From Geosiphon pyriformis uo1 (taxonomy: Eukaryota > Fungi > Glomeromycota): a DNA stretch of 64,000 nucleotides. The position numbers were made by a program, and so were the translations under genes. The stretch covers positions 62,001 through 126,000 of the forward strand of contig JAAOMT010000684.1 in NCBI GenBank assembly GCA_016748015.1, read 5' to 3'. Positions 36,674-49,991 of this stretch are shown one piece after another. The notes beneath the pieces were generated by a model. The model did no database searches. It saw only the letters and a list, made by a program, of their open reading frames with translations, and had not been told where the DNA came from. The first letter of the stretch is position 1; the number at the start of each line of letters is the position of its first letter.

Positions 36674-38162
36674 ATGTCTTCCGATTTTTTGCTACTTCTA
36701 TCAAAGGATCTTGGAAGACTTTTACAAGAAGAAGCTAATTACAATGTTCTACTACACATTGGCGAAGGGACAAATATGAAAACATTTCGAGCTCATTCAA
36801 TACTTTTACGAGCACGTTCTTTGTATTTTCGCATAGCACTATCGAGTGATTGGGTTAGAATGGAAAATAATATAATAATATTTCATAAACCAAATATTAA
36901 AGCGGACACATTTCAAGTTATTCTAGAGTAATGTTTTATGAACACTTTCCTTTGTTGTTTGAAGTTACCCTTTGGGAAAAACATCCAAATTCACAATTAA
37001 ACTTAAATTTATTAGTTACATTTATACGGGGAAAATAACTATTGAAAAGATTCATCCCGAGATAATCTTAGAGATTCTGGTAGCAGCAGATGAACTTCGC
37101 TTAGAAGAAATATTCACTTTTATCCAAGATTATCTGGTCTATCGAAAAACTCAGTGGTTACGGCAAAATTTTGAGCAAGTTTACCAAATAGCCAACACAA
37201 ATCCTTCATTTAATAGGCTTCAAGAATTTTGTATGGTTTACATACGTGAACATCCGGAAGAGCTTTTGAAATTGAAAGCATTCTTATCTTTTGATGAATA
37301 CCTCGTTGCTGATATTTTAAAAAATGATATAATCAATATTCCAGAAATTGAGATTTGGGGCATTCTTTTAGATTGGGGAGTTTCAAATACTCCTTCGATT
37401 AAAAGTTCGGATAGCTCAGATTGGTCAGATGAGGATTTTTTTGAATTACAAAAAACATTGCAAAATTGTCTGCCATTGATTCGATATCGGCATGTCACAT
37501 CGAATGATTTTATCACGAAAATAAAACCATTAGAAAAACTTTTCCCTTTTGGACTTTTTCGACGAATAACTGGTTTTCAAAATAAACTTATGGTTGAGAC
37601 ATATTTTGGATTACCTCCAACAAGAGATGGTTTTACCTCACGACTAATTACCTTGGAACAGATGCTGCGAATTAGTGGTTGGATTCATCCATTCTCGCAA
37701 GGGAACAAGATACAGCTTCTTTTACGTGCAAGCCGTGATGGCTTCTCAGCCTCAGATTTCCATAGATTATGCGATGAAAAAGGTCCTACAATCACAGTGG
37801 TAAAATTGCGAAAAAATGGTAGACTCATTGGAGGTTATAATCCTTTAAGTTGGGATTCTTGGTCGGGTACGCATCATGCAAGCAAGAGTTTTATCTTTTA
37901 CCTTGATAAAAGCGATGTAGCTCGAAGTCCTTTATTTGGAGATCAACCCGATTATCCAGGATCTATTCAGTGTGGCTGGCATCATGGACCAGCATTTGGG
38001 AGTGGCCCTGATTTAATATTAACAGGAGGCAATGCTACAATTTTTTCCCACAAAACACATGCTCTTTATTACAAAGAAGGACCAATTTTAAATCGAGCAA
38101 AGCATAAATCAGGTGAATATGGAATTGAAGATTATGAGGTTTTTAGTGTTGGATTCAGATAA
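36674..38162 (+). CDS. BTB/POZ-BACK-TLDc domain protein
   Basis: Exons 36674-36927 and 37016-38162. BTB (FRAHSILLRARSLYF..YIYTG..ILVAADEL), BACK (EIEIW..LLDWG..LPLIRY), TLDc (LLLRASRDGFSASDFHRLCDEKGPTITVVK..IGGYNP..GPAFG..DYEVF). Confidence 0.94.
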
Positions 38163-39219: not shown

Positions 39220-40296
39220 TTATTGAGTATTTTCAATTCTACTTTGCGTGATAACGGTCCGTAGAATTGTGCCGTATTGCTTGCATTCGTCCTCGACTGT
39301 GCGCCATTTATTCTTGACAGTTTTAGCGACAAATTTTGACATTGGAAAATCATCATCACCATCACCATCACAACATTTATCTAATTTTTCAATTAAAGAT
39401 TCGAGTTTAGTTACTTCTGATCCCCAAAATACTTCAAATTCTCCAAGATCACAAATTATGTGGCGGAGGTTTTCAGTCAGGGAATCAATAGTAATGATGC
39501 TCTGATTAACAAGTTCTTTCTGTTTTTGGATATCTTCGATCAATTGTGAGATATCGGTAGTAGCTTTCGCGGCGTTTTCTTCATTTTTTTTAGCGAATAA
39601 AGTTTGCAGGAACGCTGCTACTGAACTCCCAACAGTAATAGTACCACTGGTAGCGAGTAAACCTTCAGCGATTGCAATCGATAAAGCAACCCCAGGTAAA
39701 GCTATGACAACAACGGCCCCACCAATAATGGCAACAGTAGCACCTAGCTTCACATTTTGCCAATGACGCTCAGCATTTTCAATATTTTCATCAAGATCTT
39801 CTCTCTTGGTGCGCAACGTGTTCTCGTTGAGTTTAATCAAGTCTTCAGTGTCATGAATAATCGGTTTATATTCACGAAGATCATCTTGAGTTTTGTTTAG
39901 ATTTTCGGTTAACTTACGGTACTGGTCTAGGAGCTCTTTTGACTTTTTATGATTATTCTTGGCTTGATTCAATAACTCACGAGCCCCCACCCAAACGTCG
40001 TGAACATCGTTTTGGTTATCAAGACAAAAATCCACATATTCAATTAAGTCACTAGCGTACAAAGCCATCAGAGTACTTTGGACAATCGATTCCTCAGTGA
40101 TTTGACGAAAATGTCCACCATAAACTTTAATTTCACGGATTTGAGTCGAGATAAACTCGTTTTTGGTACCATGATTTTGACAATTTTGAAACTTTTTCAA
40201 AATGCTCTGTGTCGAGGATACAAGAGCCTGAAAGTTCATGACATTAGGGGGTAAGAGTTCATTCGCACTAACACTTGTCTCGGACATCTCCTTCAT
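39220..40296 (-). CDS. 358-aa helical protein with a central hydrophobic hairpin; candidate HBL/NHE/ClyA-like alpha-pore-forming protein
   Basis: Intact single ORF, with a probable 5'-UTR intron at about 40377-40300. Coiled coils flank a ~45-aa Gly/Ala-rich hydrophobic stretch (LGATVAIIGGAVVVIALPGVALSIAIAEGLLATSGTITVGSSVAAF). C-terminal helices carry W residues (FEVFWGSEV; KNKWRTVEDECKQY). The ORF is secure; the family is inferred. Confidence 0.6.
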   Translation of the reverse strand: MKEMSETSVSANELLPPNVMNFQALVSSTQSILKKFQNCQNHGTKNEFISTQIREIKVYGGHFRQITEESIVQSTLMALYASDLIEYVDFCLDNQNDVHDVWVGARELLNQAKNNHKKSKELLDQYRKLTENLNKTQDDLREYKPIIHDTEDLIKLNENTLRTKREDLDENIENAERHWQNVKLGATVAIIGGAVVVIALPGVALSIAIAEGLLATSGTITVGSSVAAFLQTLFAKKNEENAAKATTDISQLIEDIQKQKELVNQSIITIDSLTENLRHIICDLGEFEVFWGSEVTKLESLIEKLDKCCDGDGDDDFPMSKFVAKTVKNKWRTVEDECKQYGTILRTVITQSRIENTQ

Positions 40297-40599: not shown

Positions 40600-41235
40600 T
40601 AATATTCAGCTTAACTAATTTAAATTATTGATTTTTAATGCTATAAAATTGAATATTAATTTTAACAATATAATTAATTATATTATTCATAACTTGAAAA
40701 TTTGTACCAGAAATGTGTAACAAAATAGAAAAGAATTTATTCTAAGTAAAATTTTAACTTGTATAATTTATTTTTATTGAAAGTATTTTTGATTTTAATA
40801 TTATAAATAATTACTAATTCTTTAATTAAAATCGAAATAATAAATAAGAGTATTATAATTTTTAAAAATATTTTTGAGTTTTAAATTTCTTTTAATTATA
40901 AAATTAACAAAATTTTATTTTAACATACAATATTAAGATTAAAAAATATTTAAATTTATTGTAATATATTATAATATATCAATAAGCATCTACAAAAGTA
41001 AAAATAAATTTAATATATAAAATTTATTTAAAATATAGTTAAAAAATTAATTTATAATAATAATGATAAAAAAACTTATATTTATTTATACCTAATTTTT
41101 TTTTATTCTGCTTTAACAAAGTGTGGTCCAACCACTACCTCTAACCATACAATGAAAAAAATCATTATACAAAAGGTGTGGCTCACGCAATTTATACTTA
41201 ATTATTAAATTTTAGTTAAAAAATTTAATTATTTA

Positions 41236-41266
<31 letters not shown>

Positions 41267-41700
41267 TTCTTTTTTTATTTTAATTTTATATATACATTAT
41301 TAAATAATATATATTTTGTATACTAGATTAATATTATAGGTGGATATATTCTCACGTGTCATAGTTGGAAAATTTTGATTGGGTGACTGGTCACGTTTAA
41401 AAAACCTTTTGTTGTATCGAGTATAGTCACGAAATTTATTAATAAGATATTAACATCAAAATAAACATTTTTAATTTTTAAGTCAATGTAAATATTATGA
41501 ACTTATTATTATACTTATAAAATATGTTAAATAATTAAACTAAAGCTATTATTTTTTTAATAAGCTAAATAAATTAAACTTCAAAATTAAATAAAACAAC
41601 TGTATTTTTATAATGAAAATTTTAATTAAAAATATTGAAAAATAAAATATATTTCGTAAAATATAATGTTTTAGCAAATGAAATTAATAGTAAATAAATA
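40600..41700. other. AT-rich decayed block, probably repeat-derived, with a (TTA)n tract near 41238-41266
   Basis: Abrupt drop in G+C and no ORFs; origin not recognisable. Confidence 0.45.
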
Positions 41701-42690
41701 ATGTAAAAAAAATTTTCTCTTGCTCACGAAGATCTTTCACATAAGAGCCTGATACGAAAGTGGAGACGCCAAAAAAGATTAACATTTAGACCGAGTTAAA
41801 TAGTGCAAGAAATGTTTGGTAAGAGTTTCATAAAATTCTTTTTATTACCATTGAATTTCATCATACAAAATTTTGCGCGAAAACTGATTTTTTCATATTG
41901 GTAGGGAATTTAAAGACATACAAACATCTCCGAATTTTTTGGCATAGTTCAAAATTATAAATTTGTAAATTACCTTTTCATAATTTCTATATTTTCTTAT
42001 CATATTCCAACCACAAGTTGTTTTTTAAATTCTAAATTTGGATCAATAAGCTAATCTTATCAGTTATTATCTAATATTGCTGGAATTGAATTCAAAGATC
42101 TCTACTTAAATCCACAACCTTTGTTGGCTCAAATAATAAATAATTGCTTGACCTTTTTCCGAAGTTTGAAATTCTGAAGATAAACATTTAAGAAATTATC
42201 CGAAAGTATTCAATCAGAAAATCTGAGAAAACAGAAGTGGAAAGACTTTATTTTTTGTTTAGAAAGCTTAGAGGATGAAAATTATCTTATAGATTTCTTG
42301 TATGAAACACGAAGCAAGAGAGTTTGATTGTGTTTGTTTTAATAGATTAACATATTGTTAGCATTATGCCAACACCTTTAGAATGAAAATCAAATTCAAA
42401 GTTGAATCTCAAGAAATATTTGGGTTTTTTGTAAATGACAAAACAAATTACATGTATTCTGCTCCCTAACAGTAAAGTGTTCTGATAAAACAAACCTATT
42501 TTTAGTTGGAAAAAAAATCACAGGTATCAGACATTTAAAGAAAGTGATACAGAGATTCTTTTCTTCAATATTAAGAGGAGAAAATTTAAATTGGCCAAGT
42601 GAAATTATTTTTTATATCTAATTTTTCGGACAGAAACATATAGCAAGATCCTCTTGCTTCCACAGTTACCACTATTAAAACTATCTAATT

Positions 42691-45600
42691 ATGCAAAATC
42701 TTTTCTTATTAATTTTTATAATTATTTCTTGTTATGTCGGCCTGTTGAAGGCAAACGATAAAGGTCCTATGTGTGGAGCGCAGAGTTTAAGAAAAGGTAA
42801 GAGAAATTTGCCAATAATTTTTTAAGTTATTACATTCACTCTAAATTGATCCTGAAACATTTATTCTCTAGCATCATGTGGCAATGGTGAATGCTGCTCG
42901 CAATATGGGTAAATATAAAAGTAAAAATTTTAGTTAGAATAAATTTCGAAATCTATATAAATGTTTTCTCAAGCAAAACACTGAAAGGGGGATCTATATA
43001 ATAAGGATAATATCCCGATCATAAGAGGTCTTCTCATGTTCGCTACTCTGCATAGACGCGTGATTAATTTATTATTTGAATCTGAAGGCATAACCGATGA
43101 TGAATTTTTGTTTCTGGCGTTTCTTTTTCTAGATATTGCGGTACAGCTTTATCATGGTGTGGTGCTGGTTGCCAAAAAAACTTTGGCGTATGCAATGTCT
43201 CAAAAAGTCGCGTAAAAAAAAATGCAAAGGAAAAAAGAATAGTTTGGACGTATCCGAAGGTCAGGCGTAATTCCTCCGTTATCGAAGAATTGCATGGGAT
43301 TCGTGTGGCTGACCCATATCGGTGGTTAGAAGATCCAGATTCCGCCGAAACAAAGGTAATTATTTTTTGACTGAACGAAAGGTTTTTGTTGAAATATTTA
43401 GATCTTAACTATCATGAATTTTTGGTACTTGCATTAGGCCTTTGTGGAAGATCAAAATGCTATCACTAACAAGTATCTGGAATCGTACCCTGATCGTGAA
43501 AAGTTCCGACAGAGGTTTACATCTGTTCTTGATAAATAACGATTTGTTGCATTTCAAATTTAATAGCATTGAAAGAATTTTCCAATTCTGAAAATTTTTT
43601 AGCTTAACGACTATTTATAATTACGAAATTTATGGATGCCCATTTAAAGAGGGTGATTTCTACTATTATTTTTACAATACTGGATTACAAGCGCAAAGGT
43701 CAGTTTTCAAAACGATTTTTTAATCAATGAAGAAGGTTTCATTTATCTTGATCGATATTTTTGGCTTTTTCTCCACAGTGTCCTCTATCAACAATCCTCA
43801 CTTACAGCTGAGCCGAAAATATTCTTTGATGTATGATCGCTTTTATATCAATCGAAGTAATTTTTCGTTTGAATAAAGATCAATAACATTTTTCAATTGT
43901 TAATAATATTCTCAGCCAAATACACTCGAGACAGACGGTACAGCATCCTTATCTTCATTCAGTTTTTCCAAATCTGGTAAACTCTTTGCTTATGGTATCT
44001 CTAAATCTGGTAAGTAAAAAAAGATGATTATAGTGCCTGTTTACCAGAATGTGGTTTCGATAATTGATTTTTCGTTTTTATCAAAGGAAGTGATTGGATT
44101 ACAGTTTATATTAAGCCCACTACTGGTATTGAATCAAACCAGCACCTTGATGATTTACTTGAATGGGTCAAATTTTCTGGTTTTAGCTTTACACATGATG
44201 ATGCTGGGTTTTTTTACAATGTATGTGGGATACTTGACATTTCAAATTTCTTTTTGAAGATTCTGCAAATTATATGAGGCTAATTTTAAAACCGCACCAA
44301 CTATATATCTCCTCCAACTTAATCATAAAGCAATATCCAAAGCCAGAGAAAACAGAGGACAAAGGCACTGAAACAGATTCTAATTTAAATGCCAAGGTAA
44401 CGCTAAGAAATAACCTGAATTTAAGCAGTCGCACAAGACGCTTTATAATGTAAACTCATTTTGGGCCAATTTTTATTAGATCTATTATCATAAAGTCGGA
44501 ACTCAACAGGTCGAGGATATTCTTGTATACCAGGATCCCACAAACCCTGAATACTTTTTGAATGGTGAAGTTTCAGAGGATGGACAATATCTTCTGTTGA
44601 ATATTCTTAAAGATACTAGCCCAGTAAACAAATTTTGGATAGCGGACTTGCAAAAGACTGGAGGAAAAGTTACAAGTGAGCAATTTAAAAAGATTGAAAT
44701 TTTTGTACAATATGAAATCTCAAAATAATAATTCATTATTTTCTCAGCTGATTTGGGTTTCGTCAAAATTGTCGACAATTTCGATGCAGAGTATAGTTAG
44801 TCAGTAAATTCTCCACTTTTTTTCTTTGATTTTGCTATCCAAACTTCTTACAACTTATAAGAAATTGTAATTGCAGCATCATCAATCAAGGGTCGAAATT
44901 CTATTTCAAGACTAACTTGAATGCCCCGCGATATAAAATAATCACTTACGACATAGAACAACCCGATCAGGTTGCTTGTTTTTAACATTATATTCGCAAA
45001 TTTCGAAGCCTTTTTTTAATACAAAGTTTTTATATTCAGGGCTTTGCCGAACTCATCCCACAACATCCTGTTGACATTCTCTCATTTGTCAAACTCGTTC
45101 ATCAAACCAATCTTATCACAATTTATATGCACGATGCAAAAGAGCAACTTTCTATACACGATTTATCAACCGGTAAATTACTCCGAGAGCTTGATCTTCC
45201 AATAGGGTCGATTGAGTCGTTAGCCGGTCGAGACACGGAATTCTTTTTCAAATTCACCGGATTCCTCAATCCTGGCGTAATTTATCGATACAATCTTTTA
45301 GATTATTCAATGTCTGTTTTCCGAACCACCCAAATTCAGGGCCTAGACGCCGAAAATTTGGAGACCAAACAGGTCTTTGTGAAAAGCAAAGATGGCACAA
45401 AAATACCAGCTTTTATCATTTCTCGAAAAGTTAGGAAAATTTTATTAAGTCGGTTTCTTTTAAAATTATGGTATTCTTTGACGCTAATTTATCCCTCTTT
45501 TAATAGAATATCACGCTTGATGGCAAGAATCCGACTCACCTGTACGGATACGGAGGCTTCGGTATCAGCCAAACTCCAATATTCAGTCCCACATGGATCA

Positions 45601-46649
45601 ATTTTGTACAGCACTATGATGGTGTTGTGGTAGTTGCTAACATACGAGGTGGTGGCGAATATGGTGAGGACTGGCATGCTGCTGGGACGCTTCATAAGAA
45701 ACAAAACGTATTCGATGATTTTCAGGTAATTTTTTCAAATTAGATCTCGGCAAGCAGGAACTTTAACTTTTGCTTTATTTCGTGTATCTCAGGCTGTCGC
45801 TAAATGGCTAATCGCTAATAAATACACAAAATCTGAAAAATTATCCATCAATGGCGGATCTAACGGTGGCTTGCTTGTTGGTGCTTGTATTAATCAGGTA
45901 CCTTAAAAAAAAATTTTTTTTTTCACATCTAATTGAATTAACTGAATTTATTAAAGGCTCCTGAACTATTTGGGGCAGCGGTTGCCGATGTTGGTGTGAT
46001 GGATATGCTAAGATTTCATAAATTTACGATCGGTCACGCTTGGCGAAGTGACTATGGTGATCCTGACAAAAAGGAGGATTTCGAATACATTTACAAGTAA
46101 ATTTGAACTTTCTATGTTTTTGGTTCTGTCATTTTCTCCTTTTCAATTTTGCATATTTTTTATCTTTGCAGATACTCTCCTTTGCACAATGTTCAATCAG
46201 AAAAGCCATACCCAGCGGTCATGTTGGTTACATCTGATCACGACGACAGAGTGTAAGATATTTGGTTAACATTAAAGAATTATTTGCTTAAATCACTTAA
46301 CATTCTTTTTATTCTAGCGTACCACTCCATTCTTATAAATATATTGCCCAATTGCAATATGTTGCCAAGGATAACCCTAAACCACTGCTGTTAAGGGTTG
46401 AAACCAAGGTACTTGGAAAAATGACATAGTTATTTGGTCTCTTAATATTGTGATTAATGACCCAACAAATTTACCTTAGGCTGGACATGGGGCAGGCAAG
46501 CCGACTAAAAAACAGGTAAGTGAGCTTTTATCATTTTAATCCTTTTGGAGATGAGATTTAAGATTATTTTTTAACATGATTAGATTGAGGAGCAGACTGA
46601 TCAATTCACTTTCATTTCACTCGCAACTGGTGCTCAATGGCACGATTAA
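42691..46649 (+). CDS. Prolyl oligopeptidase (S9A) with N-terminal signal peptide and hevein/CBM18 chitin-binding domain, about 20 exons
   Basis: Exons 42691-42796, 42872-42908 and 43133-43355 give [111 protein letters not shown]. Downstream POP motifs [37 protein letters not shown] (Ser), DHDDRV (Asp), AGHGAGKP (His). Stop at 46647-46649. Confidence 0.92.
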
Positions 46650-48669
46650 TTCAAGGTGCTTTTTTGAGATCACGTAGAATTTAAAAGAATATTTCTTAAT
46701 ATATACTTTTTTATGTTGCTTTTGATGATACTTTAAAAGAGTTTTAATCAGATTTAAATTTGGACTGTTGGATCAGTTAATAACTTTTAACATATTCTCT
46801 TGAAGAAAAGCTTTGACAAGATGAACTATATGTTTTAGATTATTGTTGATTAAAATTATCATTTATTTCTTCAATTGTCATTGAAGTGTTTATGGGCTTA
46901 TTTATGTACTTTTTTTTTACTAATATTAACATGGCTGTTGATAATAATTTTTTAATAATTTAAATAAGAAGAATTCACTTTAAAATAGAAAAATCTTAAA
47001 CGATTTTTTATGAGTGACTATTTTTCAAAATTTTTGTGTTTTTCATTTTACAAATATAACAAAACTTGGCATTGATTTTTTTCAAGACTGACATTTTGTG
47101 ATAAGTTCATTTGGAAAAAAAGAACCAACAAATGTGACTTTTATTAAATTTAGGCAAAATTTAAAATATAATTTGCAAAATGAATATGCAAACCACACTT
47201 AGATTTTTTAAAAAAATGATATAATACAGCTGATTTAAGTCTTGATTTTATACAGAAATAATTAAAAGTTGTAAATTCAAACAATATTAAACATCAATTT
47301 AGTTTGCAAACTTTATAATTTTTCTTTGATGGATGCTATTCGATTTGAATTAATTTCGTATTGATTAATCTAATGGTTACTTTTTTTCATTATCAATACA
47401 ACTTTCGCAGTTTTTCCTCTAATTAAATAGGCCAAGATTTCTCAATATTGACATATACATACTTTATTATAAATGGTCTTAACCAACTTTTTTTAGGTTC
47501 CCAGCTGCTCAATAAAAATTTATACGTTGACGTTATTATTATTCGACGTGGTTTCAATCGGAATCTATACATGAAATTTTTCTTTTCAAAAATTTTTTTG
47601 AAACGAATTTAATATTTTTTGTCATGATCTAAATCATACTCAATTTATTAAATTAAAAATACTAAATTATCAAAATAAGCAATAAATTTATTAAAAAGAT
47701 ATTTATACAATTAAATTTATTAATAAAATTAATCTGTTTATTATAAAATTTTTACTATTGAGTTTAAGATATATTTGATGATTTTGCATTTGTTAAAAAA
47801 TATAATCAAGTTAGACATAATGTTTATAAGTAAATAATTAAACCTTTTCTAATTAAAATGTTTTAAGATCCAAGGATTTAAATTATTTTAAACCCTGTTT
47901 TTTTTATAGCTCTTAAACTCTTTCATAACTTTAACTTCTTTACGTTCAAATCAATTGTTTTCATGTAAAAGAATCAAATATGATTTAATTAAAGTCAAAA
48001 CCTAATTCTTTTTAATATCAACATTAATCAAAAACTTTCATTCTAGGCTATTAGGAGCCTTTTAATGGTCCAGATTGTTATTAGCTAGCTATAAGCTAAA
48101 ATTTTTTGTTGAGAGCCCAAAGGTAGTGTTTATTAAAAGCGGGTTTAGACAATTGTTTTAACGTATATATTTCACAAAATTATTGACGTTAAGTTTTAAT
48201 AGGCAAAGGATCCATTTCAGCATGAAAATCTGTAATTGCTTTTTGAGATTCTATATATTTTGGACAATAATGGTATACTTTCATAGGAATCTAATTACTC
48301 TGGGTGATTCTTGATAAGAGCATGTTTCTCTAAATTTAGTTCCTGTGACCAAGTATGGCATAAAATTAAGGTTTTAAATGAAAGAGATTGTCAAGATTTC
48401 TTGTTTTTTACTTATCTGAAGGTTACATAACATTATCCTTCCCCAATTTTACAAATTATAAACACTGTGTAGCATTTTAATTCAAATTTATAACAAATAC
48501 TCTAATGTTTCTTCAACATCGCATTTTTCTATAGCTTATTTGTTTGTTTTTAACTTACAATTGCATAATTATGATAGCTTGGCTTAATTCTGGAACCTAA
48601 CTATTTTTAAAGTAGTTAATATGATAGCACATCATGAACAGTTTCAAAATCCGAAAATTCAATAAATGT

Positions 48670-49991
48670 TTAATCGCGTATCCATCCGAAAATTGTTTTA
48701 TCTTCGTTTAATTTTTGTCCGACAATAAAGATTTCTGTCTGGCCACACCTCAAATCACGGCAAACAGTGGCAATACATTCCATTCTTGGCATACCTCTAA
48801 CTCTAACTTGTTCCCATTTCTTTTGTAAGGGCGAAAACAACTTGAGGTATTGGCATGGTTCCTGATTTTCGTAAGCTTGATTATTTTGGCCGTTCAAACC
48901 ACCTAAGAAAGCAATTTTATTTTGAATGGAGAACATAGCAGCTCCATAGCATCGACCAGGATCGAAACCTTCTCCAAATGTTTGTATCCAATTATCCGGT
49001 AAACCAAATGGAAAATTTTGATAAGATGGCGAAATATATTTTTTCCATTTATCTTTATTCACATCGTAGACCCATAAATCTTCATCATCATTTATTTTGG
49101 GAAAATCACTACCAGGAATTGTTTGTTTTCCGCCAAAAATGTATAGTTTGTCAAACGCTACCGTGGAAGAATGAAAAGACCTCGGGTATGGGAGATCAGA
49201 AGACGGGCTATTGGTGACACATTTTTTCAGAATGATATCATATATTAAAAAATCCCTGATATCGTATTTCGTGCCTTAAAAATACACGGCCAAAATAAAA
49301 GAAGTTAAATAACTTATTGCCATATTTATCATTAGTAGTTTTGATTTGTAGCTTAAAGTTTAGGCTTACCGTTAATATCAGAAATTCCACCAAATAGTGC
49401 AAGACGACGATTATCGATTGCATTCAATGAATGCCTGTACCTTGAAACGAGTTCTTTGTCGAAAGATAAGATTTTACTCAAATTCATTGTCTCAATATTT
49501 AATTCGTATAAGACGTTTTCCAGTTTTCGAGTCTGGACATTCTCACCACCGAAAAAATAAATTTTTTGTTCAATCGAAGTGACAGCTGCGTTTTGGATTG
49601 GCTCATGTTGTCCGGACAAGATGTTGATTGTTTTTGGTAGCCAATTAGGACGAGGCTCGTTTAAATCAAGGATCCAACATATCGGTTGTCGGATTGTGAG
49701 GTCAAGAAAATAAAAAGTTTTGTTGATCAAGATGCCTTCTCGATAATTTTTTATTGAAGGACATACCCCAGAATTAAATTCTGGTGCCTCTTTCCACACT
49801 GGAGACACAAGGCCAAAATGATGAATACGAACGACTCGATAAAGTTTACGGCAAGTAAAAGAAAGACTTTTTTGACCTTGGACCTCGAGATTCTCCAAGA
49901 CCATTTCAATTACTTCATTCGGTAAATTGACAAGGCTAGCCTTGATCAAAGACGACGATTCGAATTGTAACCACGAAATATTTATACTCAT
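48670..49991 (-). CDS. F-box / Kelch-repeat protein
   Basis: F-box LVNLPNEVIEMVLENL..SLSFTCRKLY, then Kelch blades (KIYFFGG, RYRHSL..LALFGG, PRSFHSS..KLYIFGG, IAFLGG). One intron at about 49369-49275 joins the two ORF-track pieces. Confidence 0.85.

Follow-up and report, generated by a model that had tools for sequence, protein, structure and literature searches.

The window analysed here, i.e., the whole stretch of 64,000 nucleotides from contig JAAOMT010000684.1 of the fungus Geosiphon pyriformis, contains at positions 42691-46649 of the plus strand a gene joining a signal-peptide-like N-terminus and a hevein-type chitin-binding module (CBM18) to a complete prolyl oligopeptidase (POP) of the S9A family. 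The gene has 20 exons, all its introns are of the GT..AG type, and its coding sequence of 2355 nt comprises 784 codons followed by the TAA stop (46647-46649). Exons 1-3 were translated singly and the 17 further exons were mapped by hand, none of them with a stop in its phase; 14 homologous splice junctions of the POP part match a spliced complementary DNA (cDNA) contig of the paralog described below. The architecture, proposed in a first-pass annotation of the window, is borne out by the exon translations and by the Pfam families PF00187, PF02897, and PF00326 on the encoded protein. That annotation missed the main biology, namely that the gene is a young chimera of two duplicated genes, which arose in the Geosiphon lineage, and not a member of an old family. 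The exons, three of which derive wholly or in part from a chitin deacetylase (CDA) parent, are as follows.

42691-42796, plus strand: exon 1, with the ATG, the signal-peptide-like N-terminus (42691-42753), and the first Cys of CBM18 (42772-42774); ends in phase 1
42872-42908, plus strand: exon 2, with Cys2-Cys4 of CBM18 including the CCSQYG core; GT..AG sites and intron positions as in the CDA parent
43133-43355, plus strand: exon 3, a single open frame of 74 codons with Cys5-Cys8 of CBM18 (to 43193), a linker (43194-43241), and the POP N-terminus (from 43242)
43438-43514, 43603-43698, 43779-43830, 43916-44009, 44087-44220, and 44331-44396, plus strand: exons 4-9, POP body, translations stop-free
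44480-44675, 44748-44799, 44877-44970, 45040-45429, 45507-45725, and 45793-45897, plus strand: exons 10-15, POP body, translations stop-free
45957-46096, 46172-46252, 46318-46408, 46480-46515, and 46584-46649, plus strand: exons 16-20, POP body, with the stop TAA at 46647-46649

The three small 5' exons with GT..AG introns had been predicted correctly, except that the boundary of exon 2 was off by at most one base, the split codon being Gly either way. Exon 3 taken alone matches two Pfam families, Peptidase_S9_N at positions 1-34 (E 3e-8, above the cut-off) and Chitin_bind_1 at positions 22-37 (E 0.07, half a domain), and the fusion thus does not depend on a guessed splice, as had been argued. 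The linker between CBM18 and the conserved POP start, VWTYP...DPYRWLEDP, is 16 residues long and Lys-rich. The first ATG (42691) has an A at -3, and the second, at 42769, corresponds to Met27. The GenBank model KAG9287111.1 (P0278; hypothetical protein G9A89_001005 of Geosiphon pyriformis, 758 aa), found in a search seeded with a Funneliformis POP, is identical to the exon translations from Met27 on; as it starts at the second ATG, the public model is devoid of the signal peptide. Protein positions below are those of P0278. Comparisons of the gene were made with single exons or with P0278, and the 26 residues ahead of Met27 were studied through exon 1. In the POP frame there is no ATG, GTG, or TTG from the upstream stop to 43302, and the old POP start codon now reads ATA, so that a translated POP body implies reading through the hevein exons.

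The protein matches all three Pfam families expected of it: Chitin_bind_1 (PF00187) at residues 2-38 with 34.8 bits (cut-off 27.8), Peptidase_S9_N (PF02897, the seven-bladed propeller) at residues 63-476 with 386.8 bits (cut-off 24), and Peptidase_S9 (PF00326) at residues 544-749 with 206.1 bits. The hevein domain is complete, with all eight Cys residues in the spacing C-x9-C-x4-CC-x5-C-x6-C-x3-C-x6-C, and it keeps every invariant column of 58 CBM18 domains. Its motif CCSQYGYCG....W retains the Ser, Tyr, Tyr, and Trp predicted to bind chitin, which we take to be the positions of hevein Ser19 and of the three aromatic residues Trp21, Trp23, and Tyr30 that stack against N-acetylglucosamine. An AlphaFold2 model of the module, aligned with 57 other CBM18 domains, has a predicted local distance difference test score (pLDDT) of 89.6; in Foldseek it matches wheat germ agglutinin, pokeweed lectin, rice class I chitinase, and the Hevea CBM18 with probability 1.00, a root-mean-square deviation of 1.1-1.6 A, and 49-60% identity, while a profile search with the module found wheat germ agglutinin at E 1e-32. 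CBM18 was modelled separately because in the full-length model residues 1-55 have pLDDT below 50 for want of alignment depth in that part. The POP body is modelled with pLDDT mostly above 90 and beta strands throughout the propeller region, and it matches pig POP at E 3e-244. The Ser/Asp/His triad is intact, as had been stated; its three columns are invariant or nearly so across 42 POPs and align with the triads of solved POPs.

45859-45861, plus strand: catalytic Ser, in GGSNGG (S609)
46242-46244, plus strand: catalytic Asp, in HDDR (D692)
46486-46488, plus strand: catalytic His, in AGHG (H728)

The N-terminus encoded by exon 1 has a 16-residue hydrophobic core that peaks at 2.87 in a 15-residue Kyte-Doolittle window and ends in ..LLKA. 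Of 35 residues in exon 1, 27 match the corresponding exon of the CDA parent. The CBM18 of that parent is rich in disulfides and needs the endoplasmic reticulum (ER); with its hydrophobic segment conserved, the signal-peptide-like N-terminus of the chimera should send the protein into the ER. N-glycosylation was rejected as evidence: two sequons (NSS and NIT) were gained, but the total of two is the median of 95 POPs.

The parental loci were searched for in the Geosiphon genome (128.3 Mb in 792 contigs), and both were found on another contig, C642. Exactly two POP loci exist in the genome, the gene in the window and its paralog at C642:~110.9-114.5 kb on the minus strand, coding for KAG9293227.1 (P0381, 782 aa); the separate non-secreted POP about which the first-pass annotation had asked is thus present. 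The window at 43232-46667 forms a single alignment block with the C642 POP gene, in which exons and introns together are 87.5% identical; the parental segment as a whole covers C642:114.4-110.6 kb (minus strand), and the POP part of the chimera is ~89% identical to the paralog protein. Homology to the POP parent begins 7 nt (possibly ~20 nt) upstream of the old start codon, where the paralog reads M-VWTYPEVRR and the window reads [10 protein letters not shown]. The 5' part comes from elsewhere on C642: positions 42474-43212 of the window are 73% identical to C642:209317-210030 (plus strand), and the homologous segment as a whole covers C642:207.9-210.03 kb (plus strand), the gene at this locus spanning C642:209.3-211.0 kb. 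Its signal-peptide exon, its CBM18, and both introns correspond to those of the chimera; they are followed by ..FDDGP.. and a CE4 NodB domain (Polysacc_deac_1, PF01522, 90 bits), which identifies the 5' parent as a CBM18-chitin deacetylase. The flanks of the chimera follow the respective parents, and the two homologies meet in a short A-rich stretch within exon 3.

41785-42690, plus strand: 5' flank co-duplicated with the CDA parent, matching C642:207918-209530, ahead of the parent's ATG, in collinear patches (73-97% identity); presumed promoter region
43213-43231, plus strand: fusion junction, ~19 nt, A-rich, between CDA-derived DNA (homology ends at 43212) and POP-derived DNA (homology starts at 43232)
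43239-43241, plus strand: old POP start position, ATA (Ile) here and ATG in the parent (Met before VWTYP)
46650-47422, plus strand: 3' flank common with the POP parent, homologous to 46667 and again at 47239-47422 (69% to C642:110589-110759)

The junction holds an A9 run (43214-43222) and an out-of-frame ATG at 43222, and it ends where an A6 run (43231-43236) starts. Synonymous divergence (dS) amounts to 0.30 between the 5' module and its parent and to 0.26 between the POP part and the paralog, and two such similar values would suit a single event as well as two in quick succession. The protein tree groups both POPs of Geosiphon as sisters (support 100/100) that diverged once the Ambispora lineage had split off, which makes the chimera peculiar to the Geosiphon lineage.

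Several features of the parents and flanks were noted in passing. The shared 3' flank is split by a dispersed repeat of ~180 bp (46693-46871) lying just past the stop codon, with copies of 71-77% identity on at least eight contigs. Further CE4 chitin deacetylase paralogs, 51-58% identical to the CDA parent, are located at C673:27124-28403 and C700:100160-100783, and the C673 copy has a CBM18 match just upstream, which makes the CBM18-CDAs a small family in this genome; a gene at C608:217.3-219.0 kb contains at least five tandem CBM18 repeats. The model of the parent POP, KAG9293227.1, carries an N-terminal extension of 84 residues without a Pfam match, free of Asp and Glu and rich in Arg, Ser, Thr, Ala, and Leu, thus resembling a mitochondrial presequence in composition. 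The paralog's cDNA contig begins 213 nt upstream of the MVW ATG, short of the upstream Met of the public model. Judging by this composition, the parent POP may not be purely cytosolic.

The combination of modules is unique to this gene in the data searched. Among 5.8 billion protein clusters searched with residues 1-100 of P0278, only P0278 itself combines PF00187, PF02897, and PF00326, in line with the earlier claim that no protein of such architecture has been described; the other matches are CBM18 proteins with CE4, CAP, CotH, or LRR partners, and ordinary POPs. In precomputed domain assignments P0278 is the only one of the 120 POPs listed to have PF00187. When exon 3 was compared with 1.84 billion representatives, none of the best 150 matches had both motifs, all being multi-CBM18 proteins or POP N-termini, and against metagenome loci it matched POP N-termini only (query residues ~21-74), with no CBM18 part. 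The known partners of CBM18 include deacetylase, tyrosinase, and lectin-like proteins (PMC3569864), and the surveyed fungal proline-specific peptidases mostly have no signal peptides (PMC8469457). The gene model was already public as an unnamed hypothetical protein minus its signal peptide, and what is new is its two-parent origin.

The canonical POPs of MEROPS family S9A (pig POP, 1H2W/1QFS, and the paralog KAG9293227.1) share with the chimera the full Peptidase_S9_N propeller, the Peptidase_S9 domain, and the triad in GGSNGG, HDDR, and GHG; where their N-terminus is free, the chimera has a signal-peptide-like segment, CBM18, and the Lys-rich linker, and it has Thr instead of Cys at position 255. 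With the CBM18-CDA (CE4) parent it shares the promoter flank, the signal-peptide exon, CBM18 with its two introns, and the first residues past the last Cys, but POP stands in place of the whole CE4 catalytic part. Two POP paralogs of Syncephalis, a mycoparasitic zoopagomycete, namely KAI8053484.1 (P0143, S. plumigaleata) and KAI9591900.1 (P0053, S. fuscata), are S9A POPs which, like the chimera, have hydrophobic signal-peptide-like N-termini, here followed by a spacer of ~60-90 residues before the conserved Wx[10 protein letters not shown] start; they have no CBM18 and are of unrelated origin. From their N-termini, they may represent an independent route of a eukaryotic POP into the secretory pathway, so that secretion of a POP may not be unique to the chimera, while the chitin anchor is. 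The macrocyclising POPs (GmPOPB, 5N4B; OphP, 7ZAZ; PCY1, 5UW3) have the S9A fold in common with the chimera and are themselves POP duplicates that were neofunctionalised, but the chimera is much nearer to the housekeeping POP (E 1e-244) than to them (1e-167 to 1e-207), and no precursor-peptide gene was noticed beside it.

Both modules are under purifying selection. For the POP part the pairwise ratio of nonsynonymous to synonymous divergence (dN/dS) between the chimera and the paralog is 0.21 at dS 0.26 (694 codons), with an intron divergence of 0.16. Amino-acid changes polarised with seven outgroups fall 45 on the chimera and 18 on the paralog (~70-75% on the chimera), and the branch lengths in the tree are 0.094 and 0.031, respectively. 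With dS split evenly, dN/dS (omega) is ~0.3 on the chimera branch and ~0.1 on that of the parent, the neutral value being 1, and the synonymous excess on the chimera branch is significant (binomial P 3e-7; 4e-3 under a conservative split). The introns show 23 insertion or deletion events in 1305 nt and the exons a single 6-nt in-frame event in 2106 nt; no frameshift is seen where ~15 would be expected on the chimera lineage without selection (P 2e-7). At alignment positions with at least 85% conservation in 40 other POPs, the only chimera-specific departures are D68N, C315T, V396I, and V416A. The 5' module has dN/dS of 0.40 relative to the CDA parent (72 codons) and keeps eight of eight Cys residues, the Ser and aromatic ligand positions, the splice sites of both introns, and the ATG.

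One of the four departures deserves separate mention.

44615-44617, plus strand: Thr codon, position 315 of P0278, aligned with residue 255 of pig POP

Cys occupies this position in 90% of 40 homologs as well as in the paralog and in the wild-type pig enzyme. Cys255 renders POP sensitive to thiol reagents, and an engineered Thr255 variant reportedly remains active; the closest PDB matches to the Thr-containing segment are the pig POP chains 1VZ2 and 1E5T, both with Thr255. Moreover, the POP body of the chimera holds two Cys residues, as compared with a median of seven in 95 POPs. The loss of Cys255 and the low Cys content fit an enzyme that acts in oxidising surroundings outside the cell, but relaxed constraint could also account for the loss.

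The explanation that we favour, and regard as reasonably probable, is that the product of the fusion is a functional, secreted, chitin-tethered POP. Two pieces of DNA would have been joined in the Geosiphon lineage through duplication and rearrangement, the first carrying the promoter, the signal-peptide exon, and the CBM18 exons from a copy of a secreted CBM18-CDA gene, and the second being a nearly complete copy of the housekeeping POP gene, with the in-frame join inside exon 3, seven to ~20 bases upstream of the POP start codon. Transcription of the chimera would yield a 784-residue preprotein directed by its signal peptide into the ER, where CBM18 would fold with four disulfides; once secreted, the protein would be anchored by its chitin-binding module to the chitin of the fungal wall or of a chitin-containing symbiosome layer. 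Its propeller and alpha/beta-hydrolase body would retain peptidase activity and cut short peptides, its probable natural substrates, after proline outside the cell.

A number of observations weigh against this explanation. The only run with Geosiphon RNA (X1), available as contigs from one sample in one condition, contains a spliced contig of 2162 nt that shows the differences, the 6-nt insertion, and the 5' sequence of the paralog, at a depth of ~99, but the depth over 42300-43223 of the window is zero and contigs cover POP exons only; no contigs encoding KAG9287111.1 are on record. The predicted RNA joining the hevein exons to POP was accordingly not recovered, and the chimera is unexpressed or very weakly expressed in the X1 sample, although contigs show presence and not absence, one condition does not stand for all stages, and a negative of this kind is weak. 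Whether the join is in frame depends on the A9 and A6 runs having been assembled at the right length, and the signal peptide was judged from hydropathy and homology only. Selection was measured since the duplication and not since the fusion, which cannot be dated relative to it, and the chimera evolves about three times faster than its parent. Finally, the identity of the two POP copies is a mosaic of 77-96% per 150 nt: positions 45957-46347 (exons 16-17 with introns) are 92-100% identical to the paralog, while in 43532-43831 (exons 5-6) the proportion of synonymous differences (pS) reaches 0.45-0.59. Such a pattern suggests recent gene-conversion tracts between C348 and C642, and conversion could have helped to keep the frame clean.

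Much of this would also be expected if the chimera, though truly present in the genome, were a by-product of rearrangement that is silent or dying, a promoter-capture accident with a frame kept clean by youth and gene conversion. The hevein exons without reads next to a well-covered paralog, the threefold rate of amino-acid evolution, the loss of a 90%-conserved Cys, the tracts of 95-96% identity extending into introns, and the confinement of the gene to a single species all agree with such a fate, which we nevertheless consider unlikely: in the most diverged exons, where conversion is improbable, the proportion of nonsynonymous differences (pN) is still far below pS, the frameshifts expected of a decaying copy are missing, nearly all conserved POP residues are retained, and the chance that the 5' module would keep its eight Cys residues, splice sites, and start codon at its dS of 0.30 is ~1% by a rough estimate. 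The A-runs raise another question, since the ATG at 43222 lies between the two runs and misses the POP frame by a single base: one more A in 43231-43236 would let it open an ordinary non-secreted POP, and the upstream exons would become a small signal-peptide and CBM18 gene or its remnant. The public model comes from the same assembly and lends no independent support to the fused frame. Such a homopolymer error seems to us quite improbable, as the frame is continuous as assembled and a POP of this kind would need either a new promoter in intron 2 or exon 3 or translation past a long upstream frame, given that parent-homologous DNA starts only 7 to ~20 nt before the old start codon; a CBM18 frame ending ~10-25 codons past the junction is possible, but two separate events would be needed. 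A contig misassembly joining CDA and POP reads at the A-rich stretch is hardly credible. It would fit the low complexity of the junction and the presence of both parents on one other contig, but with a divergence of 12-27% from the C642 genes the two halves are not made up of the parents' reads. There is no CE4 remnant in the window, and neither a third POP locus nor an orphan CE4 half of matching divergence in the genome or window, which speaks against misassembly, as does the collinearity of each flank with its respective parent.

If the chitin-tethered POP is indeed made, it would represent a natural experiment in enzyme relocation, in which a single rearrangement gave a cytosolic housekeeping peptidase a promoter, a signal peptide, and a wall anchor. 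The two parents still exist and allow comparison, and the chimera already has early adaptive-looking changes, above all the loss of the thiol-sensitive Cys255. A proline-specific oligopeptidase would thereby join the fungal cell-surface toolkit, with a possible role with peptides of partners or competitors, and the birth of a new gene could be tested in the one fungus that harbours a cyanobacterium as endosymbiont. A silent chimera would still be a well-resolved example of chimera birth, of limited biological consequence. A thin chitin-containing layer reportedly lines the symbiosome around Nostoc (Schuessler et al. 1996, cited in PMC6634985), and the chitin-anchored POP might be an adaptation to this endosymbiosis, trimming or destroying proline-containing cyanobacterial peptides at the symbiosome, perhaps differentiation signals, to manage the partner. 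We regard this as very doubtful; were it true, it would be the first wall-tethered POP at a fungus-cyanobacterium interface, and one that arose through a datable gene fusion.

The surroundings of the gene are as follows. A scan for Rfam families and repeats around the locus found nothing, and comparison with the genome places a highly repeated element, with dozens of copies of 66-92% identity on both strands, at 40727-41338, in the stretch that separates the duplicated promoter flank from the gene upstream of it. An ORF (open reading frame) for a coiled-coil protein of 358 aa, with no family above the cut-off, lies at 39220-40296 (minus strand). The neighbours are a BTB-BACK-TLDc gene (36674-38162, plus strand) and an F-box/Kelch gene (48670-49991, minus strand). 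Both families are expanded in arbuscular mycorrhizal fungi, and the chimera thus lies in fast-evolving, repeat-rich surroundings.

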